The notes under the pieces: generated by a model
The model's input: the letters and a program-made list of their open reading frames with translations, nothing else
What the model was told of the DNA's origin: nothing
Databases searched by the model: none
Program-made: the position numbers and the translations under genes
Source: Selaginella moellendorffii
Taxonomy: Eukaryota > Plantae > Lycopodiophyta
NCBI RefSeq assembly: GCF_000143415.4
Contig: NW_003314277.1
Location: 2,429,955 to 2,470,656 of the forward strand
DNA: 40,702 nucleotides
Direction of reading: 5' to 3'
In this document: in pieces, positions 1 through 34,314 of the stretch
Numbering within the stretch: the stretch's first letter is position 1
Layout: every line of letters starts with the position of its first letter

Positions 1-165
1 GAGATACTCTCGTTCTGTCCACAGCATTTGCCAAAGTTCATGGTGCCAAAGAGCATCGTCATTCTCACGGCCTTGGACAAAACCGTGACTGGCAAGATCC
101 AAAAACAGGTGCTGTGCAGCAAAGCAAGAGCTCTTGGCAGCGAAGCTCTACAAGCCAACTATTGA
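1..165 (+). pseudogene. C-terminal fragment of an AMP-binding / acyl-activating enzyme (acyl-CoA synthetase family); may continue left of the window; intact versus captured status unknown
   Basis: Frame +1 reads EILSFCPQHLPKFMVPKSIVILTALDKTVTGKIQKQVLCSKARALG...Y*. This matches the 'LP.FMVPK....LPKT.TGKIQK..L' terminal motif of ANL/AAE enzymes. Confidence 0.65.
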
Positions 166-186
166 ACTTGTAAAGCTTGAAATCGT

Positions 187-800
187 TCACGGCCTGGAAA
201 ATCCCCAGTCTAGCTTGGCAATTTTAAACCGGTCAGCTACTGTTCCGTCTATTGTAATGTACTGGAATGAAAAATAAATAAATAACATGCAAGAACCAAG
301 AACGCAATTCATCTACCTCAAACAGTAGCTTTGTCTTATCAGCTGTCACTCTTGCATATTCAAATGCTGACCTTCAAATCAAGCTCCATGAACTAAACTG
401 TCGACAAAAAAACATAGAAAAGGTAGAATATCAATACCATATAAAGAGCTTGAATATAGGAAACAAAACTGCAAGCTTACATTACAAGGGAAGTCATCCA
501 AGCTGAATTCGGCCATGCCAACCATGGCATGAACTGGAGCTGAGTAAATTGTAGTGTCAAAGAAATTGACGCCCATTAAATCCTTGATCGGGTGCTGCAG
601 GCAGCAGCCCTGAAACACAGCACAAGTTCGCTCGTAGCTGTGAACATGCCCCACACTGCTAAATCAACCTGTGCAAAAAAAATAAAATAAAAAATGACAG
701 TTCATTCTAGTTTTCCCTTTGAAGAGCTCGTGTTTTACCTTGTTTCTCAAGAGCAATGGTTCCACAGCTGCTACAAATTTCGGATCCACAGCACCATTTT
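187..800 (-). pseudogene. Purple acid phosphatase (nucleotide pyrophosphatase-type) 3' exons, disrupted
   Basis: Spliced exons read VDPKFVAAVEPLLLRNK / VDLAVWGHVHSYERTCAVFQ...APVHAMVGMAEFSL / FSSWSLI*RSAFEYARVTADKTKLLFE / YITIDGTVADRFKI. The GHVHxYERTC metallophosphoesterase motif is present; there is an in-frame TGA near 379; N-terminal exons are absent. Confidence 0.8.
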
Positions 801-960
801 CTTACCAGAAGAAAATATAATTTATAACTGGAGTACACTGAAAGAGAATTCTGCACATAATCCCACACATAGGGAAAGCAGGAGAGAGGGAGAACCTTGC
901 AGTCACCCATGGATTTGCCTGCTCTTTGCATAGCACCCTGTAGTTCTCCTTGCTCTTGTT

Positions 961-1066
961 CGCCCTAAAAGCCACAATTAAAAAAATTCTGATTTGAAAA
1001 GTTACGACCTTTTGTAATTATATCTCAGCCGTTAGATCTTGGCATATGCCCAGAATAAGTGTCATA
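961..1066 (-). mobile_element. 5'-subterminal segment of the non-autonomous Helitron family (unit D, truncated)
   Basis: cgccctaaaa...atctcagccgttagatcttggcatatgcccagaataagtgtc matches 7032-7133 and about 21561-21662, but lacks the terminal ~50 bp. Confidence 0.7.
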
Positions 1067-2674
1067 ACTTACGCTCTCCACATAGATTGTGCTCTCCACA
1101 TAAAATATTATTAAAGACCTGTAATTGATAGCATGTCCATCATGTTTCTCTTGTCTTTTTTTTTTCAACAGAAAATGAATTAGTTTTTTATAGTTTTTTT
1201 TTTCTATTTTCATACCTATAAGAACTCTTTCTTCATTGTGATTATCATTGTGTACATCTTTTAATAACGCTAACTGGGAAATAACCGCAAATGCAAGCAT
1301 GTTTTTTAGCATAAGGTAGAGCTCTTAAATAACGTTAATATCTTCAGGTTGATAATTGCGACAGTCTAAAAGCATCAACTGAATTCCATTTATAGAAGAA
1401 TCCAGACTTCACTCAATAATCAGAGTTTTAATTGTGATATAATGTTATGAGTTATATTTATTATGTGATAGAGTCAATTGTAGAAGAGATTTTTTATATA
1501 AATATTATATTAAGTTTAACTATGTATGATATTATTATGATTATGTTAAAAATANNNNNNNNNNNNNNNNNNNNNNNNNNNNNNNNNNNNNNNNNNNNNN
1601 NNNNNNNNNNNNNNNNNNNNNNNNNNNNNNNNNNNNNNNNNNNNNNNNNNNNNNNNNNNNNNNNNNNNNNNNNNNNNNNNNNNNNNNNNNNNNNNNNNNN
1701 NNNNNNNNNNNNNNNNNNNNNNNNNNNNNNNNNNNNNNNNNNNNNNNNNNNNNNNNNNNNNNNNNNNNNNNNNNNNNNNNNNNNNNNNNNNNNNNNNNNN
1801 NNNNNNNNNNNNNNNNNNNNNNNNNNNNNNNNNNNNNNNNNNNNNNNNNNNNNNNNNNNNNNNNNNNNNNNNNNNNNNNNNNNNNNNNNNNNNNNNNNNN
1901 NNNNNNNNNNNNNNNNNNNNNNNNNNNNNNNNNNNNNNNNNNNNNNNNTCATTTCAGATTGAAAGTTTTGGAATTGCATGATAATAAGTGAAAGATGTTA
2001 TCTTTATCTGTTATATTTTCTTTTATAAAATTATAATATTTTACATATTTATCATTGATATTCCCTTTTTACCTAATATTTATATTCATGCATTTTAAGA
2101 GTAATATTTAAAATATAAAGTATTATATTATATATCATAAACATTATTTCTGTAGTTATTTTTATAAATCTGAAATAAGATTATTATCTCCCTATATTCA
2201 TGTATTTATATTTAAAATTAAGGCTTTATAACACTGTTATGAATGCTGAAATTTTATGATGATAAATGCATGGTAATGTTTTACTCTATACTGGGGTAGA
2301 GTAGGGTTTGATGATATATAAACTTTTCTTTATGCTAGAACTATAATATATCAGAAAATTCATGAATGGTATATAGAAGGTTTAATATAATATAATTAAA
2401 TTTCTTTATGTACTAATGTTGTCTCAATCATATTTATACCTTATTATGTTTTTCATGTATAAATGCAATGTAGAATAAAGTGGTAGAAAATTTATGATAT
2501 TATATAAATCTTAGGCTACATCTTAGCCAATTGAAATCTCAATATGTTTAATTTCATTTATATTTATATTAATAAATAACATAAGATTACTAATAAGAAA
2601 ATATTTTAATAATAAGAGATAAATAATAAGAGGCAGGCAGTGCTAGGAATTGCAAGAGCAAGAGGAGGGTTGTC

Positions 2675-3003
2675 ATGGTCAAGAGCAAATCAACACCAAG
2701 AAAGCTAGGGCAAAGATCATGTGCGAATCAGTGAAACAGACTGGCCCAATAGTTCATGAAGAATTCTATGAAGAATTGCTGTAGATTAGACTTTATAGAA
2801 TATAAGTAATATTAGTCTATGAAAAAATTGTTATTAGTATTTGAAAAGACCAGTTTGACATAAAAGGATCAAAATCATCAGGTTCCAACTATCATGCATG
2901 CAAAGTGTTCCATCAAAGGAGAAATAGGCTGCTGAGGACTACCTTGTCCAACTCTTTGAAGCCATCAATTTATGTGCCCTTCATGGCAAAAGAGTCACAA
3001 TAA
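2675..3003 (+). pseudogene. Histone H3-fold fragment, CENH3-like, degenerate
   Basis: 2928-3003 reads AAEDYLVQLFEAINLCALHGKRVTI, preceded by an AG acceptor and followed by gtaag. A decayed N-terminus MVKSKSTPRK starts at 2675. 'AAEDYL' is typical of plant CENH3, whereas canonical H3 has AAEAYL. Confidence 0.65.
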
Positions 3004-5419
3004 GTAAGTATTCAAATAACACATACAAAAAGATTATAGAATTTATCAGCCAGCTTGAAAATTATACATTTACCCTGTCGGCTTAGAGGAACCTTGGAGC
3101 ATTTCATTTGATACTACATTTCTTTTTCTTGCAAGTTCACTTAGAGTTTACCATGCAGCTTATACTTATTGATTAGAATCCTCAAATTTTCTTAGAAAAT
3201 TGCTGCTACTTTCAGGCATAAATCACTGTTAATTTCAGGAATCCTCAACCACATATTTTTGGGAAATTAAATTTAGTATTGGCAAAAGATCTTACCTGGA
3301 AAGAGATGTAATTAAAAGCAAAAGTAAAATAACATAAGATTACTAATAAGAAAATATTTTACACAACAGATATCTAGAACTATTAACTCTTCTATTTTAA
3401 GTTATAAAATATCATATTTTTATAGAAACTATTTTATTTATATTATAAATTAGATATTTTTCTTTATTGTATTTAGTATTTTTGAAATTTATTTAAACTT
3501 ATTCTCTAAAATTACATTATATTGTTATTTTAGATTTTTTTTCCATATTTGTATTCGATATCCTCTCCCTTCAAAATATCATACTTTTTAGAAGTACTAT
3601 CTAAAAGTTAAAGTATTATATTTTATGTCATTAAGATTCTTTCTGTATGTGTTTTTATATAGAGAGAATGCGAAAATGAATTAAGATTATTATCTTTATG
3701 TTTAGTTTTATTTTTATATAAATTTACAATGAGGCTAAAATCTTTCAATGAAAGGTAACTTTTTATCCTGATATTATGGTATTGATGATTCATAATATTG
3801 TTTTTTCCTAAAACCATAACATATCAGAAAATGAAAAAATGGTCCATAGATTGCTTTATTAACAATAAATTTTAAGTGATGATGAATCACATTTTTTAAG
3901 ATGGTAGCCTTTTGTATTGTGTCTAATGTTGTCTCAATGATATTATATTTATCTGTTTTCCACGTATCAATGCACAAATTATTAGTGTAAATAACAGACT
4001 TATTACATATTCATCAATGAATCTACTCATATTGAGTTGTCTATGAGCTCAGATATAGTCTCATATTTATGCAATATCATAAAGTTATAAATCATAAGAT
4101 TATGATAAAAGTATAACTTATTTACAAGATATAATAGCTGGAGCTATTCAACTCTTCTATTTTAAGTTATAAAATATATCATTTCTATAGTCACTAATTT
4201 ATTTACTTTTAACTTTATAGTATATCTTTTATTGTGTGTACTATATACCATCTTTGTAATAAAAATTATGTTTAATTTTAATAATGTAGTATTTAATTAA
4301 TTAGATACTCTTTGTTCTATAAATTTTTTGTTCTAGAAAAAAGAGTATTTCATTGATTTGAGACTATATTTTTAAACATATTGAACATATTTTTTGTTTT
4401 AAAAATATCGTATATAGTAGACATAATAAAAAAACTCATCAATGAATACCATCTTTCTACAACTAAATGTTTAAAATCATTTGAACCTAGTGCATTATAT
4501 CATCTTGGATCAGTTGTCCAATTTCCTTTTATATGTATTACAATATCACTTATGCCTCCTTGAATATTTGTTGAATTTAACTCCAGAGAATACAAAAAAG
4601 AAAAACGCAAGCAAATGAAGTTAGTAATGGTGAAAAGGAAATAGGAACTTACTGCTGGCATTTTCTTTTAAGCCACTCGAACTTTCTTCATGCCCAAGTC
4701 GTTCTCAAGGCCAGGAGCACTCTTTTTTACACCACTCCTTCACAGCTTGTCGATCTTAATGCTGCAATTGTTGGCAAATCCATGGGTGTTGCCAGTTGGC
4801 GGAACATCTCCAGTTTCACATATTCTGCAAGCATTGTTTTTGCCCATATTACTTTCCAAACAAATCTCCACATTAGTGGTAAAAGGTATGAGTGCTTGAT
4901 TTCCAGTAGCATTTGCTACAATTACATCCCCTTCTAAAATGGCATCCACAGTTTTCTGCTTTCTTTTGCAGCCCATTTCCAGCTAGTTATTTCAATTTGT
5001 ATAATGCAAAGTAGAATATCTTTGGTAGGTGTTAGTTCTGTTTAGATCATCATGCAACGATACAGTTTCTTATCGATAAGTTTTTTTGGTTTTTTTTTCT
5101 GCTTTGTATTCAAGCAAACATAGCAATAGCACAATAGAATAGAGATTCTTGTATGTGCAGGTCACTCTTCTGAACTGTTTTCTTCTTGCACGCTTCCTTT
5201 TGAATGTTTTAAGTGTTTTTAGGATCGTGATCTGGAACGACATATAAGACATTTTGTTTTTTACCTAAAACCTTTACGAGAGAGAGCAAAATACTAAATA
5301 AAATCAAACACGGAAATCATTTCTATGCCCTGATTTAATATACAAATATCATGTACCGAATCAAACCAAGCTCATGGCTTCAAAGTTGTGTCTATAAACA
5401 CGTACATACACAACAGTTT

Positions 5420-5730
5420 ATTTAATGCTGTCTTATTACTTCAGAAATGGCTTTTTTGAAAACAGTTCATGGCTTTGTCTGTAAGAAAGTAGAGTAGGCT
5501 GCCATGTAGAGCTCCAATCCTTGTTCTCCACCACCTCAGCTGCCATGTACTTTGCTGTGGTGATATCTCCTAAAGGTGCTGATCACCACTTTGTCGCGCA
5601 TGTTTAGCTTAGAAAGAGTGTTGTCGAGCTTGAGATCCTGGTGAACCACACCCCTCTATTTGAAGGTCTTTACCAGCTGCTTGATGATTCTGGCTACTTT
5701 CTCCTCACCAATCTTCTCGCAAACATGCTA
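5420..5730 (-). pseudogene. Ser/Thr protein kinase catalytic-domain remnant
   Basis: Reads EEKVARIIKQLV..*RGVVHQDLKLDN...TAKYMAAEVV, a degenerate HRDLKxxN and YMAPE, with stops and frameshifts. Confidence 0.6.
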
Positions 5731-5829
5731 TATTTAAAAGACCAAATAATTATGGAATAACGCCTTAAGAAAGGAAGGCAATATTTCCACCAACGAACGT
5801 AACCACTCGAGGAAAAATGCCCGTGCCCT

Positions 5830-5925
5830 GTGCAAAAGGAGACTCGGACAACACCACAAAGTCAGCAAACTTTCTTTGTGTTAGCGACCCAACCAAATCC
5901 TCCAATGCAGCTGCATACACACAGT
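5830..5925 (-). pseudogene. Amidohydrolase-3 (LAF3/YtcJ-like) C-terminal fragment
   Basis: Reads YAAALEDLVGSLTQRKFADFVVLSESPF, matching the 'GSL.PGK.ADFVVL' end motif of this family. Confidence 0.55.
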
Positions 5926-6067
5926 TTGGTCTTTACTACGGCCTTTTGGACGTCTTGTGGTTTCCTCCTGTGATGTTTTCCTTCTTGGCGTTAGAGAGTA
6001 ACTGAGGATCAAACGAAACAGACCTTGCCATGTAAGATTGCGCTGCCTGAGCAAAGCCAAGCTTGTA

Positions 6068-6880
6068 CTAGAAGAGCAGCCCACGGAAGAGTTTCCCATT
6101 GATGGAGGCTTCTAGCGTGTATCCGTAGTTGAATACGTCGCTTTCTCTAGCTTCAAACATCTTCTCGCCTAGCAGCTGAACGTGAGCTTGAAACTCTGTA
6201 GCATGAGTTTGACAGGGAAAAATTGGAGAGGTCCAAGGTTTTCCGCAGATACCTCCGTGAGATGAAACCAAGCTCTTCTCCGCATCCTGTTGCTTGTCTA
6301 GCACGAATGGCGTGGCACGATACTTTTGCCGCCTTCTCTTAAGTTCCTTATGCATGGATAGCTTTGGTTCTGATGGATCTTTCTCCCTCAGCATCTCTTC
6401 ACAGAAAAACAGCAACCATATTGTCAAGAATGGCAGCAATGTCAATAAAAGGGAAATACATGTCATCCAGAGCTTCAAGCTCTTCGTTACATCCCTCATA
6501 GAAGAATAATATGCCTCACTCTTCGTCCACGGAATCTCCTGCAAGGGAGAAACGTGGAGAAGGCCCAGGACCAGAGGGATTCGAAGTCGCCCAAACACCA
6601 GTCGCTACAAAATACGTAAAAGCCCCATGAGAGACCAACAGGAAACAAATCTACCTACAAGCGAAATACTTTCCATGGCTGATTGTTGTGTGCCCGGCTC
6701 CTAGCATCAGCTCGGCACCAATCGTCTTTACCTCCCACCATGCCATTGTTTCTGGATTACCACTGTCCTCGCCACCCATGACAACGAAACAGTTCTTATA
6801 GGAAGAGCAGGTATGGCTATCCCAAGGAATAGGCGAGACTCCAGTGGTAGAAATCTTCTTCCAGACAAAAGTATCTACAG
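6068..6880 (-). pseudogene. Plant kelch-repeat protein, C-terminal fragment
   Basis: Kelch-like segments TFVWKKISTTGVSPIPWDSHTCSSYKNCFVVMGGED, GAGHTT and GCNEELEALDDMY are present. The C-terminus reads EKMFEARESDVFNYGYTLEASINGKLFRGLLF. Frameshifts and stops are present. Confidence 0.7.
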
Positions 6881-7307
6881 GAAAAAAAAAGTTTAGAAGA
6901 AAACAAGGAAAGATAACAGAATATTACTCGTGTTCAAAACATGGAGGACGTTGTAGTACTCCTACTCTGAGGGATCGCTGGATTTCCCACATCCCCCATA
7001 CACGAATCGACGCTGTCTCCTTGTGGTCACGCGCCCTAAAAGACATTTGAAATTTTTTATGATCCCAAAAGTCAAGACTTTACATTGTTTAATCTCAGCC
7101 ATTAGATTTTGGCATATGCCTAGAATAAGTGTCCCCAGTATATGCTATTATTATACGGGCTTTTTCGTTTAAATATATGGGTACTAGCAGGGATCCCAGC
7201 TCCGCTAGGAGTAGTAGAGAATATTTTCAATTTGAAAAGATGTATTTGTAACTATAATTATTTAAACTATTTCTTTTTCTTAATTTGTTTTAGCATGTTT
7301 ATTTTTA

Positions 7308-8090
7308 TAAGTTGCTACCAAGACTTACAGCTTTGATTCCAATGTGTATTATACAGCTTTACCAGGTTTGCAATTCCTTCATGCCTTTTTAGTCATTTCT
7401 TTACTGCACTAACTGGTTTTTCTCATGACAAGTTTGAGCCACAAAATCACAGATATCATGTAGTGATGGTGGTAGTGACAGTTTAGTGACCCTTCTATGA
7501 AAGTTCTTAAGCACAATTCTTAGGAATGGAGCTCTACCTCAGCTTCATAGAAATTGCTTAATGAAAAAACAGCACTATAAAAAAAAAATTATAAACTAAA
7601 CAATGAAGAATCCGAGTAAGCATGTCAAGGAAAAGAAAAAGTACACATACCTCGAGTGGTCATTAGGGAGAGAGCAATAGGAGTGGCATGAAACTGGATT
7701 GGCGCTATGTAGCATTTAAAAAGCTGCAAAACAGAGGTGAGGCACCAAACACCAAGAAAAAGAAAAAAAAAAATGAAAAAATGATCATAAGAATCATAGA
7801 ACACAAGCAAGGTAAGCCAGAAACTTGCTTAGAAATCTCAGCCGGCCTAAACAACAAAGTTTCTTACCTTGTTACTATTACCAGTTGCTACTAAGACTTA
7901 CAGCTTTGATTCTAAGCTGTGCGTTCTGCAGCTTTTGTTTTTTTCTCATGACCACAAACATCATGCAGCGATGGAAGCAGTGACAGGTTGGTGACCCTTG
8001 TGCGGAAATCCACATTTGCAGTTAAGTTCTTAAGTGTTGTGTCATAACTCTCAGGAATGGAGCTCTACCTTGGCTGCATTTAAAACTAAA
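7308..8090 (+). repeat. Diverged direct duplication inside unit B (about 7308-7560 versus 7883-8090)
   Basis: Shared blocks gttgcta.aagacttacagctttgattc, ttttctcatgac, gtgaccctt, aagttcttaag and aggaatggagctctacct occur in the same order. Confidence 0.7.
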
Positions 8091-8829
8091 GAATGATTGA
8101 AATCAGCAAACAGAAGGAAGGTAAGCAAATTGTAAGTTGTAAATGATGTACCTGCAGACAAATCTTGCAGATGGTGTCCTCTTTTTAGTTGCACCAGTGC
8201 TGCACACACTTTTGATGAGCATACTACCAAACACAAAAGAGAGAAAAATAAATGAGGAAGAGCCAGAATTGCTTAGAACTCTCAGACAACTCAAGGAACA
8301 AAGTCCCTACCTTCAACCTGCTGCAACAAGAGCATGGGATTTCAGGATTCCCAGTCTCGTCTTTCTCCTGCCCACCACCATCACAAGGATCACTCCATAA
8401 AGCCTCCATCGATAAAATCCCAACAGGGCAAAAATAGAATCTACTGAACATGAAAAAACAGGTTTTGAGCTGGTTCCATTCTTATAGAAATGGGACTCGC
8501 CCAACCAGTGCTGAGTCTCTCAATGTCCGTGTGTGGAGAGCAAAGAACACAACCAGCACATCTTTAATTTCATGGCAGCCAGGAGCCTTGTGCCATGGAA
8601 CTTACAGCTGGGTAGGAGAAGGAGAACTCTGACTTGAGAAACTTTGCCATGGTCAGCAAGGGATGAGGAATTCTCACAGTCGACTTGGATGCATAACTCC
8701 ATGCAATATCAACAACATCGAGCGAGCATGACAAGGAAATTTTGTAAGTTGATCGAATAAATTCTGTATTGATTGAAATCAGCGAATATGAGGAAAGTAA
8801 GAAAATCAAAAAATTTAGTGCGGATGACA

Positions 8830-9830
8830 TTACCTGCTGACAAATCTCACAAATGGTGTTCCCTTATCCTTATTCCCAGTGGCTATATTGGGAACCAGGA
8901 ACTATTCCAAGCTGCAGTGCTCCTGGCCTCATGGAATAAAAAACGTTCTGGTTTCTTTTGAGCCCATCCTGCGTGAATCAAGCAGCTAGAGCTCCAGAAG
9001 ATTCTTCGAGTTGTAGAATTTGAATGAACTTGAACTTGTACTGAAGTTTTATACATAGAACAAGATGCACACTTCACAGGTAAAATGCCTTGCTTGCTGT
9101 GTCCTTAGTGTGCTACATCGCGACTTTTTTTGTCTTGGGATATCTGTGTAAGTGGTTCAATCCTGCTTATCAAGATTGCAAGCTCAATCTCTTCTTTATC
9201 ATGAGCTCGCTATCTCTTAGCATCTCTTTTTCTGCTATCTTCGTGCATCCTCAGGTAACGACGTTTTCTCTGTTGAGTATGAATGATTGTTTGTTTTTGT
9301 TCCAGCTGAATGGGCGCCTGCTACCTGCTCTACTGCATGTAACTATGCTACAATGCATTGTCAAGCGAGCCGTGAGACTACAATTGAATTAGAGTGGCCA
9401 CCATGCTTATCTCCGTGATATATTCTGTGGACTCTTTGACCACTTTTCTGTCTCTGCCAGCTCCTCCTCGCAAGGAAGGTAACATTAGAGCGACTTTGTG
9501 AGTTTTTCTACTCAATTCTTCTTCCAGAAGCTCCTTTGCAACCTTTGCTCTCAAGGAGAGATTTCAAAAACAGCAACAAACTAAGCAGCACTGGATCTGA
9601 GAACGACTTCCACGAAGCAAAGAAGCCGTCCCAGCACCGTCCTGTCACGTACATCTACTCATTCTTTTATATCTTGCGAGCATGTACTCGGCTATGTTGC
9701 TCACTGGACCGGAGACAAGGATGCTATCGACATTGGCTAGCCTTCAAAATGGGTCCAGATTGGCACAATGTGGTTCACAGCGGCACTATACATTTTATTG
9801 TTCATAGCTCCACTCATAGACTTCTTCTAA
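8830..9830 (+). pseudogene. SERINC/TMS (serine incorporator) membrane protein fragment
   Basis: Reads WFNPAYQDCKLNLFFIMSSL...HPQ|LNGRLLPA, then PVTYIYSFF, MYSAMLLTG and DIG*PSKWVQIGTMWFTAALY. These are plant SERINC motifs, with frameshifts and a stop. Confidence 0.75.
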
Positions 9831-12789
9831 GCGCATGTGAAGTAAGCTCGAGTTTATTGTAACGTAGTGTTGTAAATTTGGAGAAGAATTAAAAGTCTTT
9901 GGTTGGAAGCAAATTAAGAGTTTTCACCATGGGATCTAGTGTTGAAGATCGATTGTGAGAACTTTGGAGCGCCTGCATGGAAGAAAAGCAAACGAATGAG
10001 GAACAAAAACTGATCGAGTTTTTCTTTGTTTTTACCTTGTTCTCCTGCATAGATGGGGATCTCATACAGCTTTTGCCGCTAGAATCTCGTGCACATAATC
10101 ATCTTCAACCTGTGAGATCACACAGTCAGAACAAACGCGCGCCCTAAAAGGTGATAAAAGCTTATGTTTATGAGACGAATGGATCATACGGACAGTATGG
10201 TCGAAAGGCTACTTGCTGGTAATGCAGCGGTGGTGGCAGATGCTGAGGTTATGGAGGTGTCACAACCACAGCTGCTGCTGGTTCTTCACAGAACCTGTTG
10301 ATCAAAGATCATCCTCAATGACTTCTTTTCGGCTTTTTGGTCACCTCACAGAACAGTGATTGTCTAAAGAAGTATTTTTTTTTCTATTCCAGGATAGTCT
10401 CCAACATTCAGGAACTTCTCTTGTATTGTGTGGTCAATTTCTTGAGGTCCTTGCTTGGAATTTTGGAATTTTGGGGCCATTTTTGTAGGTACCATACTTT
10501 ATCAAAATCCATAGTTTGAACTAAAGGCTTCCTTTGTGTGGAGCACTGTCTTGAAGATCATGGGTATAGGGATATTCCCATATATCAAGTCTTGGTAAAT
10601 CACCATTTCCCTTGTCCAGAAGTCCCAAATCCAACACCTCTGGAAGTCTTTTGTGAATTTTATTTTTATGCATATATTTTATAAAGGTGGGAATATATTG
10701 ATATTGTAAGTGGACTTAGAATGTTTAAGAAAATCATGTAAAATTCTTTTTGAACTTGACCTAAAATATAAGATTAATATAAAATAAATAGATTATAATA
10801 CTATAGAATGAAATATAGAAAGAACATATAACATACATACATATAACATGGATTTTGTGGAAAATGCTAATATTGAAGACTAAAAATGATTTATAACATT
10901 ATTCCTATTTATAAAGATATTAAAAATAATGATATTCTAAGATATCCTCAAGAATTTTTTGTTTCATTATATTTTTATATATATATTCTCTATTTTTATT
11001 ATTATCATTATATTGTAAAATAGTGATTATTAGTGATATTATTAGCATTTTCTGAACACTATAGTGGTGAGTGATATAATGGAGTTTCTTTGTTTAAAAG
11101 AAGAAGTAAACTTGTATTGTCATAGAAGGGTCAAAATATCATCATGTGTGACAAAATTCCATATTTTTTGTTACTGCTCTAATCCCAATTTCCAATGCAT
11201 GCCATTAATTTTACTGCAATAGTAATATAACTATTCAGTAGCTACGTTATTAATAATTAAAAAGCTGTATTATTTGAAATTTTTAAATTTTTTTTACATC
11301 ATCATTTAAATTTATCATGGGAGGACCCTAGCATAAATTCTAACTTTTATTTTTTTAAGCTATCTGCTATTTGTATGACATGTGGTTTCTCCTTTTTCTC
11401 TACTATTTTTAATTTTTATCGTGCTCATTGAACAGCCCAAGATTTAACACCCTTTCAGCTGTTGAATCTGTGATAATAACAAATACAACTCAAAAACAAA
11501 ATCAGTCTATGCTATCAAGTTTTTACCCAAGGAACTTCATGTGCTTGGATGTACCAGAAAGGACTCCTTAGCTTATGGAACTGAAGAAGGTAGCTCGAGT
11601 TTTTCTTTCATCTCTGAGAAGAAGCTAACAAAGCTTTTGCTTGTAGTAACCTGAGCATAGATGGTGAAAACTGGTGGCAAGGCCATGCACATGCTTACTC
11701 AATTCCCAGCCAAGGCACTCTTAAAAGGATTGATTCACCAGGTTTAATATTTGTAGCATCACAAGTCTCCCTGCAAGCTGACTTGGTCACTCAGAGAAAC
11801 TGAGAGACAGTCTACTTCGTGATTGAGTTGAAGGAACTCAAGTTGGTTGTTTGGTTGTTGTTGCTGTTTGTGGGATTGAAACACCAGAGGATCTTCTCAT
11901 AGATTGCCTAGGACATGAATGCATCCTTGCCAACACTGATTTTCAGGGGTTGTTCATGTAAGTAGTACTCATTTCTTACAAGTTTGATACTATGCAGGTT
12001 AGGTCATTTGTCTGACACAGCAAGGCGTGAATTTCATCGTTAGCATGTAGCTCTAGATCATAAAAAAAAATTGGTTTTTTTACTTCCATACTTGGTCCCG
12101 GTGGGAGTGTGAAAGCTTTTCTCTCAGATTTACCAGACACTTGCTGGGCAGGAATGATGGTACATATGCATGAGTTTTTCCTCTAGTGTTTTTCAATCTC
12201 TTTCTCTTTCTTGAGCAACTATGGCAATGCTTTCCAAAACTTATACACATATGGCGGATACAGCATTCTTCCCTGCATTGATGCTGTTATTGCCTACATC
12301 TCTGAAGATAACAGCACATAGATGATAATTTGGTAACATCACTTGATATCAAATCAAAATCTGGATTTGATCATTTGTAATCTGGATCTATAATACAGCA
12401 CACTTAGGGATGGACGGTTGCCTGTGAAAGTCTGCAAGAACAAGGTAACTGTAGAGCTGCAAGGAATGAACCTTCAGGAACTTACTCTATGAAGAATCTA
12501 ATAATCCAGAACACCTTCTGCTCAAGGTTCCTCGGGGATATGAAGAAAGAAACATTTAGACTGCGAGAGATTCCTTAATGACCTTGCCATAAGCAAACAC
12601 GTCTGCTTGGGCATATAAACTCGTTGGTTGTTATGACAATTTACTGACAATCTCATCTGAATGAATCGTCAGCCTGTGGTAACGAGAGTAATAACAAACT
12701 TACTTCTCAAAATCACTGATTGCTGTCTTTTGATGATTCCAATGAAGTCGCACAGAACAACTTGATGTTTGTTACTATCTGAAAGTACT

Positions 12790-13110
12790 GAGCTCTCCTT
12801 CACCAAGGCGCAAAAACGCAGAAAAGCGAGAGTGTTGAGGCTGATATCGTCACTAAACTTGTTTTCTTATGAACGCAAGAATGCCATTCACAGTCTGTGA
12901 ATATTGTGTTCTTGGTTTCAGTAATGTGTTGAAAGTTATTTCTGGCAACTTTCTCCACCAGTTCAAATGCAAGATGCATAATGCCGCTATCTCTATCTGT
13001 TGCAGCAGTAATAAAAATCTGTAATTGATAAAGCATTGATACCTTGTCCAAAATTACTCAAAACTTTGTTACCATAACCATAATTTTCCAGCCAGATTTT
13101 ACGTTGCCAA
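12790..13110 (-). pseudogene. BIG-type Sec7 ARF-GEF fragment (HDS region); further decayed exons may extend toward ~11500
   Basis: Reads NVKSGWKIM...IFITAATDRDSGIMHLAFELVEKVARNNFQHITETKNTIFTDC...SLNTLAFLRFCA, matching the BIG1-5 consensus NVKSGWK/AFE/FTDCV/SLNAIAFLRFCA. Confidence 0.8.
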
Positions 13111-13649
13111 CTCGGATCCTGCCTCTGTTGAGACCTGTGGCACTCAGGAGGAACCTGGCAACCTCTTCAGGAATTTTCTCCACTTCTTGGCTTTTACAAG
13201 GAAATCAATACTCATGCAAGGCTTCTGGTTGAATAGTATGATTCCTTTCTGTATAGTGTAAAAAGCTTGGAATGCCCAGTTCTTCATGCATCCCTGGTGT
13301 ATAGGGTGGAAAAGTTACAGAAGAAATTCTCAGCACTGGCGCTCTCTTACAATGAAGCAGGGATAGAGGTTACCTGAAGCTCAAGGTTGTGAACACGTCT
13401 TTGACTGCATTTAAGTTGATGCTTGATCTGTTTCTGATTCTAATGGTTCAGTGGTCTCATCCCCGACTTCTGTAGCAATAGCTCCTCCCGTGGATATGCT
13501 TAGAGTGTCCGAATGTCTACTTCAATGCCATAATTTCTCGCAAAGACAATGAAACTATGAAACTATAGCAATGAAACTATAACTCTGATATCATGTCCTG
13601 CAGAAATAAGTTTCTTGCCAATAAGGTCCTGTCCGCAGAAAAATCCAGA

Positions 13650-14330
13650 TTGTTTAAAAAAGAAAACCGATGAATGACATGATCACCTGTGTCGCATTGA
13701 AGGCACGTTTTAAATATTTCAACGTCCAGGCAAGTATCACTAATCCGCATAGTGGAAGCTAGCAAGGAAAGAAAACCACAGTTTGTCTGACCTGATCAAA
13801 AGATTGGGCCAGTGCAAAACCTCCTAGACGACCTTTGCCAGTCCCAACAAAAGAACAACTTCCTCTCCAATCTGGAAGAAGCAAGTAATCAGATTTGAAT
13901 GAAAGGATATGAATTTCAGTACCTTCAAATCAGGGGTGACGATGAGTGTAATGTCTGGACAAGTCACATACGACTAATGACGAGATTCGCAAGTGCCTTG
14001 ACAGTTTCACCACCTGCTTGAACAGCCATTGACAAGCTGTCCTTTCCACCTTCTATTGCAACCTCAAGCTCGATCACAGTGTCACGAAGAGCAACAGCAG
14101 GATTGTACATATATTTCGGAATCAAGTTCAACCTGCAAAGTTAAACAGATCATAAGGTGTGTAAACACAATTAAGATGAGAGTACCTTAGCCCAAACAAG
14201 ATTCGTCAAAGCTTCTCCAAGCGCCAGCCTAGCCATAGCTGCAGGATTCAGCAGTCCCTGCAAATTGTCTTCAGAAAAAAGTAATGAATTTTAAATCTAC
14301 CTTGATCGGTTGTTCACCAATAGCGCATGC
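13650..14330 (-). pseudogene. PUR4: Phosphoribosylformylglycinamidine synthase (PurL/PFAS) internal fragment
   Basis: Exons read ACAIGEQPIK / GLLNPAAMARLALGEALTNLVWAK / IELEVAIEGGKDSLSMAV / YVTCPDITLIVTPDLK / RRLGGFALAQSFDQ, with frameshifts. Confidence 0.85.
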
Positions 14331-17300
14331 AGCATGTTGCACTTGGACACATCCTTGACATGTTCATGGAGTCACATGAAACCATGGAGTTTGTGGATGC
14401 GTCGCTTCTTCCACCTCACAGCCAGCTCCTGGAGAACGTTTGTGGCTTGCAGAGACTTTGGAATCTNNNNNNNNNNNNNNNNNNNNNNNNNNNNNNNNNN
14501 NNNNNNNNNNNNNNNNNNNNNNNNNNNNNNNNNNNNNNNNNNNNNNNNNNNNNNNNNNNNNNNNNNNNNNNNNNNNNNNNNNNNNNNNNNNNNNNNNNNN
14601 NNNNNNNNNNNNNNNNNNNNNNNNNNNNNNNNNNNNNNNNNNNNNNNNNNNNNNNNNNNNNNNNNNNNNNNNNNNNNNNNNNNNNNNNNNNNNNNNNNNN
14701 NNNNNNNNNNNNNNNNNNNNNNNNNNNNNNNNNNNNNNNNNNNNNNNNNNNNNNNNNNNNNNNNNNNNNNNNNNNNNNNNNNNNNNNNNNNNNNNNNNNN
14801 NNNNNNNNNNNNNNNNNNNNNNNNNNNNNNNNNNNNNNNNNNNNNNNNNNNNNNNNNNNNNNNNNNNNNNNNNNNNNNNNNNNNNNNNNNNNNNNNNNNN
14901 NNNNNNNNNNNNNNNNNNNNNNNNNNNNNNNNNNNNNNNNNNNNNNNNNNNNNNNNNNNNNNNNNNNNNNNNNNNNNNNNNNNNNNNNNNNNNNNNNNNN
15001 NNNNNNNNNNNNNNNNNNNNNNNNNNNNNNNNNNNNNNNNNNNNNNNNNNNNNNNNNNNNNNNTTTAAATAAGGGAGTACTAGCAAAAGTCCCAGCTATG
15101 CTGGGAGCATTGTGTTTATTCCTGATGTTTTAATAATTTCAAAGAGTTGTAATTGTAATTATAAATTTTAACATAATCTAATCTTTATATTAAAAATCAC
15201 TTCTACAATTGACTCTATCACCAACACACATCATAACATAATAAATATAACTCATAACATTATATCACATAAAAAACTCTAATTGTTGAGTGAAGTCTTG
15301 GATCTTTTATAAATGGACTTGCTCATTGTGGGAACCCATGGTCAGATAAGTCATTTAGAGATTAAGATTTGGTAACTAATTTTTTTTCTTTTATTTGAAA
15401 TTTCTATATAGTTGATAAAATTTATTATTAATTCATGATTCATTCAGCTTTACAATTTTTCTCTTAAATATACTAAAATATAATGATGTTAAATATATAC
15501 ATATATATTAAAAACTTACTTAAATATATATCTTGTAAATTTAAAAAATATAAACATTATTATGGAGTTTAATTTTTCATCTTTTCAGACTGAAAGTTTT
15601 GGAATTGCATAACACTAAATGAAAGGTGCTACCTTTATGTGTTAGATTTTATTCTAAGAACTTTAAATATTTAAATATTTATCTTTGATATTCCCTTTGT
15701 GACTAATATTTATATTCATGTATTTTGAGAGTAATATTTAAAATTAGAATTATTTTATTATACTTTTCTCTTAATGACACTAAAATATAATGATGTTAAA
15801 ATATATATTTAAAACTCACTTAAATATACATCTTGTAAATTTAGAAAATATAAACATTATTATGTAGTCAGTTTTATATTTTATTCTAAGAACTTTAAAT
15901 ATTTACATATTTATCTTTGATATTCCCTTTGTGCCTAATATTTATATTCATGTATTTTGAGAGTAATATTTAAAATTAGAAGTATTCTATTATATATCAT
16001 AAATATTATTTTTTATTTGTTCTATTTAGAGAGAATTCTAATCTGAAATAACATTATTATTTTCTATATTCATGTATTTATATTTAAAATTAACACTTTA
16101 TAACAATGTTATGAATGCTGAAATTTTATAATGATAAATGAATTGTTAAGTTTTACTATATACTGGGGTAGAGTAAGGTTTAATGATATATAATCTTTTT
16201 CTTTATGCTAGAACTATATTATCATTTGGGATATTAGATTGTTCTCATTAAGAGGTTTGCTTGGTTGTTGTTAATAGTGAATGATTTGTTATTCTTTGGG
16301 ATGGTGGGTTATTTCTTCAACAATGATAAGAACTCTTAATATTTTACATATTTATCTTTGATATTCCTTTTTGCCTAATATTTATATTCATATTTTTGAA
16401 AGCTTGCAATTACATATAATTCTTTAAATGTTAAAAATTCTAAAATCTTTCATCCTTTCTATAGGATGGAACCAAAGAAAATTCACGAAATATATACAAT
16501 TAAATTTCAGTTGATCATATTTATATCTTATTATGTTTTTCATGTATAAATGCATTATAATATAAAGTGTTAGAAAATTAATGATATTATATAAATCTTA
16601 GACTATATCTTATCCAATTGACAACTCAATGTGTTTAATTTCATATATGTTAGTATTAAAAAGTACCATATGATTTTTGATAAAAACATATTTTACACAA
16701 CAGCTAGACATATTAACTCCTCTATTTTAAGTTAGAACATATCATATTTTAATAGACACTATTTTCTTTATATTCTACTTTAACATTTTTTATGTGTTTT
16801 TGCATTATATTAACATCATGTACAATCACATCACCTAATGACATCCACATTTTTTTATTTTCTCTTGCTACCCATTCCCAGGATTCCAAATTTATATTTC
16901 CATTGTTCATAAGCTAGTGCAAGTTCTCTAGATTTCAGTAGCATAGATAGGTGATAGATCTGCTGTAGATCATTATGGCAAGAAAATGTTTCTTATTGGT
17001 AAGAGGTTGTTTCTTTGTATTCAAGAAAACATAGCAATAACACGATAGAATATAGAGATTCCTTGTTTTTGCAGGTCACTCTTCTGGATTGTTTCTTCTT
17101 GCACATTTGTTGATGTAAAATCCACAATGAATGTTCTAGTTTTCTTAGGTTTGTGAATTAGAATGACGTACAGACAATTTTTTTCGTATAACCGTACAGT
17201 TTAACATAAACTCTTTACGAGAATAAAAAAAACTAAACCGTACATATCTGTTCCTTTTAAAATAGACATGATGGGTTTAAGGAGTGACGGCCACCAGGAT

Positions 17301-18608
17301 TACACATTTTCTAATTGCACCATAACCACAGCCCAGACATTGTACGTGATGTTACCCATACTGGACATAAGCCGAAAATGCGCATGTCCCAGTCGAGCAT
17401 CATCNNNNNNNNNNNNNNNNNNNNNNNNNNNNNNNNNNNNNNNNNNNNNNNNNNNNNNNNNNNNNNNNNNNNNNNNNNNNNNNNNNNNNNNNNNNNNNNN
17501 NNNNGTACAAGGAACTCTCAGCTTGTCTGAATTTGATACTTATGTTAGCACTTAGGCTCTTAATGTTCCTATAGGATTCTCATGCAACTAAATTCAACAG
17601 GTGGTAAAGATCATTTGGAGAAATGGCTGTATACCTTTAAGTCAATGATAGACCTTGCTATGATAATAATCCATGTCATCATTGAAGTGTTTGGTCTTAA
17701 GTCCTAGCTATGAACCATACTCTTGGTTGGAATCTAGTGCCACAGTCAGTGCTCTAATCCCTTACACAGCATTCCTTACATGGCCTTGATTGTGTCTGTA
17801 GAAAAATCTGGGATTCAAGATCAATTTGTCTCTAGAGAAAAAAAACCTTGCTGCTAAAAAAAAATAAAACCAACCAGCAGCTGGTGCTTCAATTTGGTCC
17901 TTCCAGGCCTTTTTGAGGGAAATAATAGTTCTTAGCTTCATTAATGCATTGTGTAGAGAAAATTGATGTTTTTATTTGTTTGTTTTGTAATATAAACACC
18001 AGAAAAATGACTATCAGACTTGAGTGTAAGAAACTTGCCTGGTTGGCTCTTTTGTGCTCATTTGTGTGAGTCTCAAATGCAATTCCCCTTTATAAATTGC
18101 AATTATTACATTTTCCCCTCTAAAATTTTAGATTGCAGATATTGGGAATTTAAATGCAATTATTCTGGGAGATATTACAGTAATCTGGTGTGAGGATTTA
18201 TGTGCCAAATATTTTCCAGCTCTTTGATTTAGAAATTAAAAATTATAAAATTAGTTCTAACATACTACTATATACATGAATAATTAAAATATATTTTATA
18301 TTGCAAGAACCACTGCTTCCTTCTAACTCTACGAAATTTTTGGCTTTATTAAATAATATAGAATACCATTATCTACATAAAGTATAAAATATAAAATCTA
18401 TTTTTAAAGAAATTTATTAAAAAAGAAACATATTTTCAGCTTATATCAGTTGTAAGATGGATGTTTTAGAAAATGCTAATCTTGAGGACTAAAATTGATT
18501 TAGCAAACTATTCTTAGTTATAAAGATACTAAAAATTAATGTTATTTTATTATATCTTCCTTCAGATGGAGCTTCGCTTTCTTCAACTTCTTTGATTCCT
18601 CTTACAGG

Positions 18609-19267
18609 TGGTTATGGAGCTGGGAGGCAATGCTCCATGCATAGTGGAAGATCTCATTCCAGACTTGGAAGGTACAATCGCTAGGTTGGTCCACGGGGGA
18701 TTCTATCAAAGTGGCCAGTCGTGCATTCACATGCAGCGTCTTTATGTGAGAGGTGGCCTTTACAAGGAGGTATCTGACAGTCATTTCTAAATTCTATCGT
18801 ATTCTTTGCTCTCAAATCGAGCTTTGATCTAATGTATCTGGTGCTGGTTGTGTAGGTGAAGGACGCATTGATCGCTGCCGTTAAGAAACTCAAAGGTGGA
18901 GATCCTCGCCAAGACAACACGTCCATTGGGCCCATGATATCCGAGTCGTTGGCAGCTACAGTGGAGAAGAGCGTGAACGAGGCAGTGAAGGCACTTCTAG
19001 TTGGTGGTAAGTGAAGAGGAGCTTTCATGGAGCCAACGATCCTGGAAGACGCTCCCTTTGACACAGACACAAGGAAGGAAGAGATTTTCGGTCCCGTGAT
19101 CCTTCTCTACTCATACAAGAAAGCTCTCAAAGTTTCTAGCTCATGAAGTTCTTATTTACTTCCTTTTTTTTTCTCTAAACTAAAACGGTGGTGACGCAGT
19201 GATTTCAAGGAAGCTGTGAAGGAAGCTAACAACACGCATTATGGTCTCCAGGCCGGTGTCTTTACGC
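18609..19267 (+). pseudogene. ALDH21: ALDH21-type aldehyde dehydrogenase (NADP-dependent SSADH-like) central exons
   Basis: Reads [13 protein letters not shown]...GGFYQSGQSCIHMQRLYV / ...LVGGK*RGAFMEPTILED...EEIFGPV / DFKEAVKEANNTHYGLQAGVFT, with an in-frame TGA. FYQSGQSCI is the ALDH21-like catalytic Cys context. Confidence 0.75.
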
Positions 19268-19387
19268 AGACGAGGACAACTCAGCAATGATTTGTGGATA
19301 GACTGTATTTACTCTTCTCAAAAGCTCGAGCTTGAGCTTGATCAAAAGTAAGACGTGTTGCTTTTGATCCTCGTCTGCGTAAAGACA
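19257..19387. repeat. Perfect 20-bp inverted repeat with a 91-nt spacer
   Basis: tgtctttacgcagacgagga (19257-19276) and tcctcgtctgcgtaaagaca (19368-19387). Confidence 0.9.
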
Positions 19388-19399
19388 GGGACGGTCCCT

Positions 19400-19530
19400 C
19401 AGCCACAATATGGCTGGCTATCAATGCGCATGCTTGGCAAATCGTTGAGGCAAACTCCTCCAGCCTGTGAGGATCAAATAATGAAACGCAAAGCTACCTC
19501 GATGTGCTCAAACGCATAGAAGGCCTTGTT
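19400..19530 (-). pseudogene. ALDH21: Continuation of the same ALDH21 gene, inverted
   Basis: The minus strand reads NKAFYAFEHIE|intron|AGGVCLNDLPSMRIDSQPYCG, the segment that follows GVFT in ALDH proteins. Confidence 0.7.
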
Positions 19531-19539
19531 GCTCACTCG

Positions 19540-20255
19540 GTCTCTAGCACCATCAACCTTTTACCTTTAGGAAGGAGAATGCTTGTCTATAAGCTCCTGG
19601 GAGAAGGTCCATAGCTTGTGAGTGAGCTCGGGATCTCTGCCATAAGCGCTACAGTTGGATTTGTTGGAATCCATGAAGTATTGCCTGGTGACGTCCTTGA
19701 GGCTTGGATGTAAAGCCGCGTAGCACGTCGTAGCAGCACCCTGAGAGATCGATCACGTATTAGTCACGAAAAACTTCCAGATAATTGGGAGAATTCTTCT
19801 TACCTGTGCCACATTTTTAGCACCCTGAGAGATAGATCATGTATTAGTCACGAAATTTCCAGATAATTGGGAGAATTCTTCTTCCCTGTGGCACATTTTT
19901 CCAAAGGAAGCTGGAGAAGAACTTGATAATCCCTGCATGAAGATCAAAGTTCCATAAGAAACCGAAAGCTTGCTCGGTCTCTAGCACCTGATGATCAACC
20001 TTTTACCTTTAGGACGGAGAATGCTTGTTTATAAGCTCCTGGGAGAAGGTCCATAGCTTGTGAGCGAGCTCAGGATCTCTGCCATAAGCGCTACAGTTGG
20101 ATTTGTTGGAATCTACGAAGTATTGCCCGGTGACGTCCTTGAGGCTTGGATGTAAAGCTGTGTAGCACATCGTAGCAGCGCCCTGAGAGATCGATCACGT
20201 GCTAGTCACGAAAAACTTCCAGATAATTGGGAGAATTCTTCTTACCTGTGCCACA
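19540..20255 (-). pseudogene. Short-chain dehydrogenase (TIC32/retinol-dehydrogenase-like) last exons, tandemly duplicated
   Basis: GAATMCYTALHPSLKDVTGQYFVDSNKSNCSAYGRDPELAHKLWTFSQEL occurs in two near-identical copies (about 19540-19810 and 19975-20255). An exon reading IIKFFSSFLWKNVPQ lies between them. Confidence 0.75.
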
Positions 20256-20446
20256 CGAACACACTGTGGATTGGACACATTACTCACATTACTCATTACA
20301 CATTACCTCCAGAGTGATGGAACTTTACAAGGTATGAGGAAAAATTCCAACTTGATCAAAAGAATTCCATGATTTTCCGTGTATACATAGGTATCTTTTC
20401 TATCTTGTTGTGATGTCCACAGCCTCGAGCACCTGGAACAAACAGG

Positions 20447-20630
20447 AACTTTAAGCCTCGAAAGAGAATAGCGAAGAGCAAGAGAGTGAAAAACCTTGAT
20501 TCTAGTCGTGGTTCCAGCCTCATTAAAAGTTAAAGATTTCACTCGAGATCTTGGGAGAAATAACGATAACTTTAAGCCTCGAAAGAGAATAGTGACGAGC
20601 AAGAGAGTGAAGAACCTTGATTCTAGTCGT
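20447..20630 (+). repeat. ~63-bp direct repeat, two copies
   Basis: aactttaagcctcgaaagagaatag...gagcaagagagtga..accttgattctagtcgt at about 20447-20509 and 20567-20630. Confidence 0.85.
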
Positions 20631-21466
20631 CAATGACAACGTGAATCCCCTCGTTGTCCGAGACGTCGTCCCTGTCGTGAGCTCCGTCCACCATAGCCTC
20701 TTCACCTTTCACTCCCAATCCTCATCGCATTTCCGAGCAGAGCACATCGATCTGCCGAATGCACCTGCACAGGCGGATACTGGCGGATTTGTTCCCCGCA
20801 TAAGTCTGGAAGGCGTCGAGCCTGTTCTCGCTGATCATCAAGCACAACTATGGCAACACAGAGAAAGCCATGAGCCTCTCAAACCTTTGCAAACGGAGAA
20901 ACACAGCCTCGTTGTAATAGGCTGGGACTTTCAGCCGCTTAGGATCATTATCCAGTGCCGTTCCCAGGACTTCTTCCGGAGCTGTCCAAAAACGAACGCG
21001 TTAGTTTTTTCTAGTGTCTAAATCGAAGGAACTCACTCAAAGGTGTTGGATAAGGAACAAATGTAGGTTGCGGCTTTTGGTAGGAGGTTTTTGGTCCCTC
21101 GCCAGGCTCCAACGCCGCCGTTGCTGCGATTGGCCAGAATATCTTGGTCATCCTGGAACATCTCAAGTTAGAATCGCAGGGACGAAGATAGGGGGGTCAA
21201 GGCTCTTTTACCAGATGATATTCTGCATTGAGTACTTTTTCCATAAGTGAGACTTGTTTCTTCACTCGATAATTCTCCTGTTGAAGAATGCTTTGGCGTC
21301 GGTTAAATGATTGTCATTTTCCAGCGCGTGGCCATTATCCTGAGCTTTTGAACTCAAGAATGAACCAACCAGTGGCAGCTTCAGTTCTTCACGTACAGCT
21401 GACTGTAGCTTTGAGGTGCTCTGCAATGAAGACCTCATTGAATGAATGAAGACAATGAAGACAGAG

Positions 21467-21470
<4 letters not shown>

Positions 21471-21518
<48 letters not shown>
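21471..21518. repeat. (AG)24 microsatellite
   Basis: Read directly from the sequence; on the minus strand it follows an apparent splice donor (gaag|gtac). Confidence 0.95.
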
Positions 21519-21521
<3 letters not shown>

Positions 21522-21712
21522 CTTCCTGCTAGCGATGATCGACGCTCTCTCCTTGTCACGCGCCCTAAAAGACATTTGAAATTTTTTATGATCCCAAAAG
21601 TCACGACTCTCCATTGTTTAATCTCAGCCGTTAGATTTTGGCATATGCCCAGAATAAGTGTCCCCAGCATATGCTATTATTATACCGGCTCTTTCGTTTA
21701 AATATATGAGTA

Positions 21713-21730
21713 TGATGATGATGATGATGA
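21713..21730 (-). repeat. (TCA)6 run abutting the 5' terminus of Helitron unit A
   Basis: Plus strand reads ...atatgagta tga tga tga tga tga tga ttg. Confidence 0.9.
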
Positions 21731-21976
21731 TTGTTTTATTTTGAATCTTAAAAAATCTAAATGTTTTTTATGAAATAATTTTTTATTTATTATTTGAAAC
21801 ATTAAAGAAAGTTAAAGTTAAATTTAGTGAATGTGTTCATTTTAGTTAGTAGTTTTCTATCTTATTTTTTGGATAAGGTTTAAATGAAAAAAATTTGATT
21901 AAATCAACTCTATTTGATTTGAAAACATTTTGAATTTTTTTTACTTTATAAGTATGGATTTAAGTGAAATATATTT

Positions 21977-21979
<3 letters not shown>

Positions 21980-22038
<59 letters not shown>
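21980..22038. repeat. (TA)n microsatellite
   Basis: Read directly from the sequence. Confidence 0.95.
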
Positions 22039-22041
<3 letters not shown>

Positions 22042-22267
22042 GATTATTGATAATTATTTACGAGCCATCAAATTGGAAAAAACCATATTATCCATTGATT
22101 AAATCATTAATTCTAGAAAGTAATTAATAAGAATATACTTAAAGAATCAGTCATATGTTCGTAAATTTAAATAAAGGTCTTTAAATATGAAGAGAGATTT
22201 TTTTGTTTTGTTTTGTTACTATTATGAAGTTGACGAATATCTCAGACAAAAAAAACATGCATTCAAA

Positions 22268-23184: not shown

Positions 23185-23471
23185 CACCCCTTTTCAAGAA
23201 TATCCTTAGAATAATCATTACTTTCAAAAGTGAAATCACCCGGCAAGAATAAACATGGACCCAAGAGAATGAGAAATTTAGCGCAAATCCTCCCGGCATG
23301 TAAAGGATCTTGCTCTGTAAACAAGCAGCAAAATCCTTGAATAAAAGGATAAAAAATAAAAATTTACATAACAAACACCATTAGAAATAGGAAAGAACAA
23401 CAGGAAAAAACAATTGTTCAAGTAGTTTCTTTTCTTGGCAATCATATATAACAATAAGAATTTAAAAGCAA

Positions 23472-26088: not shown

Positions 26089-26159
26089 CGATTTAGCTAT
26101 AGGGCTGAAAGGTATATATTAGATGCCCGTACATAAACATAGTACGGTATATACATCAG

Positions 26160-29100: not shown

Positions 29101-30233
29101 CGAAGTTTTCAGGATCACCAGACTTGTCTGCATTATTGCTGATGCTTCTCTGAAGTGTTGCCAGCTCAACGCATTGGCCAGCCTCGGAGATGCATGCCGA
29201 TAATGTGGTCGTCGGAAGGTCAAAAGATGCTGCATCAGCACAAACACCTTCCTGAGAAATTCAGATGAGCATTTCCGATAAGAACCATGACGAAGGACAT
29301 ACCAGATTGTGAGCCTCGTCAAATATTATGACAGAATTCTCCCAACGGATTCCGGTTAGCGATTTTCGGTTTTCCTTGTCGATGAGATAGTTATAAGGAA
29401 CAAAGATCATGTCTACTGAACCGTGAAGCTCTCGAGAGAGGAAATACGGGCATCTGCAACAAATATTTAATCATAACGTTTTAGACATAAGATAGATTGG
29501 CACTTACGGACCATGGGTTCTGCCAATTCGAACTAAATCTTCTATATCAATCGGTTCGTTCCCGAGTTCCGGATTTTTTTTGAGGTATTCTGGAACAAGA
29601 GATATTAGAGCAAAATTGCGGAATGAAACGGAAAATACCATTGACACGAGTGTGGTGGTAACACTTGCGGGCTTTGCACGAGGTACGACAAGCATTATTC
29701 TGAGCTCTCCCCCGCAATTTTTGCACATCTTTCTCAATGCATAGCTGCTCTCTCGATCCAAGAGCCACCATCTTCGGCCTACAGTTCATCAAAGAATATA
29801 AGCTCCCAAACTTTTATCGAGATCAATCAAACCTGTATGACGTCGCCTTGAGCTCGTGAATGACTTGCTGGAGCTGGCTGTGCGTTCGAGAAGCGTAGAT
29901 TACCGTAGGAAGCTTGTTTGCCTCCTGCGAGGAAGTGGGATCGAGATCACTGGATTGACTACTGGCGCTCATCCTCCTCCCCCGATCCGGCGGAGCGAGA
30001 CTCTCCCGCCAAGCCAGTGTCGCACAGAGCAAGCACAGAGTCTTTCCAGTCCCTGTCGGGCTCTCCAGAAGCGCATTTTGCCCCTGTGAGATTCGAGATA
30101 TATTTCGGTCAATCGATCTTCTGGAGCTTACCTTCTGGAGCGCCGCTATCACAGATTCCATGTACACGAGCTGGCAATCGTAGGCATCGTAGGGGAAGCG
30201 CACGTCAACGCCCTTGAGCTTGTAGCTCGGCAT
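26160..30233 (-). CDS. RTEL1: Regulator of telomere elongation helicase 1 (XPD/Rad3-family Fe-S helicase), multi-exon
   Basis: Q motif FPYDAYDCQ, Walker [55 protein letters not shown] and [13 protein letters not shown] are present. The C-terminal HHD reads YIQEVKARL...[18 protein letters not shown]. The 3'-most exon and stop are inferred. Confidence 0.93.
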
Positions 30234-34275: not shown

Positions 34276-34314
34276 CTCACTCCGCAACTCAGGATCAATA
34301 AATATATATAACTA

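Follow-up and report, generated by a model that had tools for sequence, protein, structure and literature searches.

A 42-kb stack of gene-capturing Helitrons in Selaginella moellendorffii was probably built at one spot by serial insertion of new elements into the 5' tips of elements already resident there. Serial self-insertion at TCA|T, as read from the sequence, appears well supported, since an empty allele is known, tips without TCA follow CTAG ends at other loci, and whole tips follow CTAG ends only where positions +3/+4 offer no A|T. In the proposed mechanism, the founder would have entered a host A|T followed by bases similar to the family's 5' tip (TATATTTAA), and later elements, moved in trans by a putative RepHel, would have landed within the TCA|TAC of the resident tip, where +3/+4 form an A|T. 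Each such event would have pushed one TCA outward and left a CTAG|TAC junction behind. As every insertion would lie inside the previous tip, with TCA displaced outward, the stack would have grown on its 5' side. A putative transposase that binds target DNA as it binds its own left end would prefer resident tips, with TCA|T being the first such A|T. Only tentatively do we extend this to a Helitron lineage whose own left end is a base-precise landing pad, with (TCA)n as a near one-for-one counter and unit order as a dated record of insertion and gene capture at many loci.

Insertion site and empty allele

The window, i.e., the whole 40,702-nucleotide stretch analyzed (2429955-2470656), is the end of scaffold GL377581.1; sequence L002 is identical to window 20416-40702, and L001 and L003 belong to the other haplotype, on scaffold GL377566.1. 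The BAG-domain protein of the window matches SELMODRAFT_164705, which is encoded on two scaffolds. Ordinary host genes at window 23470-31434 (aldehyde dehydrogenase, RTEL1 helicase, and BAG-ubiquitin protein) show synteny on both haplotypes. Between L003 and window/L004, intergenic identity is only 78-86%, with genic identity of about 96%; on these alignments, the divergence at the locus points to deeply diverged parental genomes.

Relative to the empty allele, one haplotype alone carries an insertion of 42,086 bp (gaps counted) between a host A and T, at GL377581.1 2409599-2451684; the two haplotypes cease to be homologous at the TCA run. The far end of the stack was reached via a PPR gene about 570 bp beyond the empty site, through its protein and then its allele on the window's scaffold (DNA L004). 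There, as the first-pass annotation had predicted, the stack ends in CTAG next to a host T: the hairpin-CTAG at L004 4298 is followed by host DNA (CTAG|TTTATATTTAA), and the subsequent bases, TTTATATTTAATAC, are the host flank of L003 from 9508. The joined flanks (...AAACAA|TTTATAT...) equal the empty allele minus a 73-bp segment that lies between short direct repeats, an indel between the haplotypes one base from the insertion site; the A|T site is rebuilt, and target duplication is absent. A single-copy contig of an independent 2024 sample crosses the site over about 750 bases, which suggests that this sample also has the empty allele. A decayed Ty3-type LTR retrotransposon (L004 4621-9738; LTRs 87% identical), located 320 bp past the far end of the stack, is missing from the other haplotype.

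The empty site contains no TCA run (at most one TCA nearby), and none follows the last CTAG. The run is therefore element-borne rather than a host microsatellite, contrary to the possibility that five or six TCA copies were already present before insertion, and a microsatellite-targeting transposon was rejected on the same grounds. None of the three diagnostic sites is gap-made, each being contained in a single contig. The stack does contain at least five gaps, across which repeats of several loci could have been scaffolded together; such an artefact is exceedingly improbable, given that the key junctions and both host borders lie inside contigs and that the host sequences at the two borders adjoin each other in the empty allele, with order and orientation preserved. 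With both borders and the empty allele known, the locus is a good test case.

Units, junctions, and Helitron class

Read on the minus strand, the sequence runs from the host A (21731) through six TCA copies (21730-21713) to a TAC-type tip from 21712, in agreement with what had been described before. The 5' end of unit A is of the TC type, starting with TCA at 21715, and its sequence is not host DNA. At 15080|15079, a hairpin-CTAG is directly joined to TACTCCCTTATTTAAA (16 bases, then a 597-N gap), and at 7184|7183, it is joined to TACCCATATATTTAAACG; the earlier claim that hairpin-CTAG ends meet tips minus exactly TCA is borne out at both readable junctions. Apart from (TCA)6, no run of at least four TCA copies was found in the window or in eight other loci examined.

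Table 1. Coordinates of stack features in the window
Feature	Positions	Strand	Remarks
Host flank	21731..22200	-	Ends in target A (21731); homologous to empty haplotype as far as the site
(TCA)6 run, putative displaced 5' stubs	21713..21730	-	Unit A itself starts with the last copy (21715-21713); run not in empty allele (L001/L003)
A-type 5' terminus	21555..21715	-	Highly repeated across genome
Unit A, non-autonomous Helitron, ~6.6 kb	15080..21715	-	Unsized 100-N gap (17405-17504) inside
A cargo: duplicated exon block	19536..20255	-	Block also in L005
A cargo: aldehyde dehydrogenase fragment	18596..19268	+	PF00171, E 5e-12; copy in L005
A 3' end: hairpin (7-bp stem) + CTAG	15080..15106	-	Type common to ends in L006, L008, L009, L011
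Unit B, ~7.9 kb	7184..15079	-	B-type tip without TCA (15079-15064), then 597-N gap
B cargo: decayed FGAM synthase (PurL) exons	13500..14466	-	PF22689, E 1e-4; PDB 9n9w, E 4e-5
B cargo: Serinc fragment	9084..9859	+	PF03348, E 3e-6
B 3' end: hairpin with one C>T, + CTAG	7184..7210	-
Unit C, ~5.8 kb	1949..7183	-	A-type tip without TCA; Kelch and amidohydrolase fragments; AT-rich tail
Inverted piece, A-type 3' subterminal region	1382..1554	+	Opposite-orientation case whole in L006 at 6225
Unit D start	1..1063	-	Second-subfamily 5' terminus (1063-961) short of its first ~50 bases; gene-fragment cargo follows

The tips of A and C are 93-94% identical over 158-178 nt, and the tip of B is a different subtype that also follows CTAG in L006 and L008. 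In the independent sample, read depth at the A-type terminus is far above that of its flank; loose read ends at 21621 match the second subfamily, to which D belongs. Hairpin + CTAG 3' ends were located at 15080, 7184, and L004 4298, the A hairpin with a z of -2.8 and the B and far-end hairpins decayed. In three other C-like copies, CTAG lies 529-545 bp past the point equivalent to 1949, so that the CTAG of C should lie in or around the 394-N gap. The inverted piece beyond that gap (Table 1) is probably an insertion in opposite orientation. The AT-rich tail of C carries an imperfect 205-bp palindrome (window 4227-4431), which other copies also have. Left of the window, the stack continues for 20.4 kb to L004 4298. 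Across 17405-17504, 14467-15063, and 1555-1948, no end overlaps and no examined locus bridging both sides were found, so that a further junction may be hidden in unit A and in unit B, either of which could comprise several elements.

All cargo of the stack consists of gene fragments, and it differs from unit to unit (Table 1), as had been proposed. The duplicated exon block of A, with no Pfam match, presumably resembles the C-terminus of a short-chain dehydrogenase. Unit A has two copies of it and the L005 element about four (2771-4193), which we attribute to tandem expansion within the cargo. The gene SELMODRAFT_412041 (LOC9642760; window 6068-8409, L007 10001-12342) is built from the Kelch cargo of C, and its JGI model crosses the B|C junction; it is, for these reasons, probably a chimeric Helitron product. 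Within the stack, a reading frame for an RPA70 C-terminus is present at L007 21453-21968.

A rolling-circle tandem array was rejected on two grounds: (i) both junctions lack TCA, rather than joining CTAG to the whole TC end, and (ii) near-identical monomers are not seen, as cargo differs and the tails of A and C are 12.8% apart. The latter difference, despite the common tip and tail type, indicates that the units are not one amplified monomer. It also bears on an explanation in which the family starts at TAC, rolling-circle concatenation or insertion behind CTAG accounts for the joining of the units, and the TCA run has nothing to do with them. In keeping with this, the examined sequences contained no A-type element standing alone with just one TCA; against it stand the absence of the run from the empty allele, the unlike cargo and tails of the units, the breach of the 5'-TC and A|T rules by a TAC behind G, and a B-type tip with TCA after CTAG (L005 2019), which also counters the idea that tips normally begin at TAC. 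We consider this explanation very improbable.

The stack consists of non-autonomous, gene-capturing canonical Helitrons with an unusual and apparently precise self-targeting habit. The canonical features are a 5' TC, a hairpin-CTAG, which agrees with the class definition of a 3' CTRR with a GC-rich hairpin about 6-12 nt upstream, A|T insertion without duplication, no terminal inverted repeats (no inverted match between the 5' and 3' ends of any unit), and dispersed copies, those with the same termini occurring at six other loci. Replitrons, with short terminal direct repeats, and Helentrons, with subterminal inverted repeats and a TT target (definitions in PMC10288648 and PMC13085455), were rejected since the ends here are TC and hairpin-CTAG at A|T. 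No RepHel was found in the visible stack, which holds only the RPA70 C-terminal fragment; in the Mothra paper (PMC4683698), Helitron-type RPAs occur only in flowering plants.

Elsewhere in the window, 34315-39428 (minus strand) is a decayed autonomous-type Helitron of another family, encoding Rep and a PIF1 helicase with stops at 35000-38300. Its 5' end, TCTATACATATAAAG, follows an (ATGT)n run and its 3' end is CTAG|T; homology to the other haplotype ends at 34301, its 3' border. It was rejected as the driver of the stack because its ends differ from those of the stack. A homologue search with the window's helicase gave no Selaginella match, and a sequence-pattern search in metagenome contigs gave no match.

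Target preference at other loci and in known Helitrons

The six other loci were reached through proteins from the Kelch cargo of C and are therefore selected by common cargo. Across nine sequences, 5 of 16 intact CTAG ends adjoin tips without TCA, three of them in other loci, and the upstream 3' ends concerned are of three different types. At L009 21425, CTAG adjoins the tip of another family minus its first three bases. Whole tips follow two of the 16 ends (L005 2018 and L009 15747); these begin TCA-AAC and TCC-TTC, with no A|T at +3/+4. This small internal control indicates that insertion at TCA|T is favored over a family starting with TAC. Insertions also occur deeper in tips: at L006 6225, an element facing the other way begins about 27 bases into a B tip, and a read contig has an insertion 33 bases into an A tip. 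Downstream flanks, the founding host site included, have TATTTAAA within 20 bases in 9 of 16 cases (one mismatch allowed); the corresponding share is 5% for A|T sites overall and 22% for those that are most AT-rich (p 0.003). A B-type tip without TCA at L010 15963 (minus strand) follows a Kelch cargo fragment that ends in CTTG; this fragment may belong to an element that terminated too early and entered at the same site.

The nesting at TCA|T could have happened partly elsewhere, with several stubs or several units carried in one composite jump through a nick at an outer TCA of a donor stack or read-through of CTAG ends, so that the run would count events of the elements' lineage rather than events at this locus. 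Several observations favor this: (i) in Fusarium, 5' stubs of 31-85 nt are stacked on Helitrons and transpose along with them (PMC5148889); (ii) within 4.3 kb, the far unit of the stack carries a series of three 3' ends (L004 704, 3917, and 4298), each of a different type and two of them decayed, from which we conclude that read-through is common here; and (iii) a junction of the same 3'-end type with a B-type tip occurs at three loci, and these three junctions could descend from one event. On the other hand, A-type tips without TCA after different 3'-end types (in the window and L005) need independent events, run length and stack length both come to about six, and a single 42-kb jump would pass at least five terminators. 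We regard composite jumps or inherited stubs, by either route, as improbable, though to be taken seriously. A TCA run at an outer end was not encountered again in the six other loci.

Serial insertion into resident tips, the reading we prefer, has partial precedents. Helraiser (PMC4778049) inserts at A|T, forms precise CTAG-TC circle junctions, and has a flank preference that is strongest on the 3' side. Like Helraiser and wheat Xuan-Feng (PMC13286980), the elements here have 5' TC, hairpin-CTAG, A|T insertion without duplication, captured fragments, and extra internal 3' ends; unlike them, which are reported to insert at A|T in AT-rich DNA without local hopping, many copies lie at a fixed base of earlier tips. 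In Fusarium oxysporum, self-insertion of FoHeli near the 5' end leaves stacked stubs, and nests are tandem or in opposite orientation (PMC5148889), much as here; in contrast, FoHeli belongs to a non-canonical group with few stubs, no trinucleotide run, and no 40-kb train of mixed cargo. Maize Helitrons are similar in clustering, nesting, multiple ends, and stepwise gene capture, but the extract of that account used here (PMC3288121, citing Yang and Bennetzen 2009) does not describe a base-precise self-target or a stub run. Centromeric Helitron arrays are likewise head to tail without spacer, although, as summarized in PMC5148889 (citing Xiong et al. 2016), they repeat one monomer, whereas the units here differ and have tips that are three bases short. 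Paramecium telomere-targeting Helitrons (PMC13085455) share sequence-directed piling in the same orientation and short repeat blocks; their target is the host telomeric repeat, while the elements here target their own tip and generate the repeat themselves.

Helitron-in-Helitron nesting is already known from maize and Fusarium. In the literature searched (subscription papers and Repbase aside), no report was found of a fixed +3/+4 self-target, of a microsatellite born in this way, or of these Selaginella stacks. With respect to the open question of Helitron target choice beyond A|T, a fixed target in the own tip would imply common recognition of donor end and target. A microsatellite could arise without slippage through serial tip insertion. 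The 40-kb block of gene fragments, located between two host genes on one haplotype only, may represent a safe-haven strategy.

The TCA run as a tally and the order of the units

The first-pass annotation equated the number of TCA copies with the number of units, predicting six. At 6-8 kb per unit, the total of 42 kb would hold about six, the 21.4 kb beyond A-C corresponding to about three, which is compatible with the prediction; visible 5' ends number four (A, B, C, and the clipped D), with about 16 kb unread, i.e., 12,125 bp outside the examined sequence and 4,125 N in the examined part. A strict match between run and unit count is doubtful, while the run is plausibly an approximate record of nesting events, six here. 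The tally can err low, because front and deeper insertions add no TCA; junctions can shift by read-through without leaving stubs; and the tally can err high, as slippage may add copies. Stubs may also be lost, or be inherited by travelling with an element as in Fusarium (PMC5148889).

Taken further, slippage would mean that a microsatellite arose from two or three true stubs and lengthened during replication, with six counting nothing. In favor of this explanation, the run has no imperfections, there are long perfect (CT)n and (TA)n tracts no more than 300 bp away, and A and the L005 copy differ greatly in (CT)n length; however, at least four 5' ends are visible, and short trinucleotide runs rarely slip. 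Growth of the run by slippage is, in our judgment, quite unlikely.

The order of the units was also proposed to record age, with A the youngest, partly from the perfection of its hairpin. The stem of A is indeed perfect, but its loop has one G>A relative to five other copies, and the stem of B has one C>T; each being one base off related ends, the hairpins cannot rank A against B, and hairpin perfection was dropped as an age marker. The far-end hairpin has three differences from related ends. The tips fit the proposed order better, with private changes at 1 of 145 positions in A and 8 of 148 in C (p 0.04) and the tip of A nearer to other copies, though the difference is less clear relative to the read majority (5 in A and 11 in C; p 0.2). 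Unit order as an age record is plausible and weakly supported, and the stack is possibly an internal clock for gene capture. The 3' end of the far unit, the oldest in the proposed order, is not visibly old: it differs from the L011 copy at only 5 of 265 bases (1.9%), which suggests that the stack grew quickly and recently rather than along a clear gradient.
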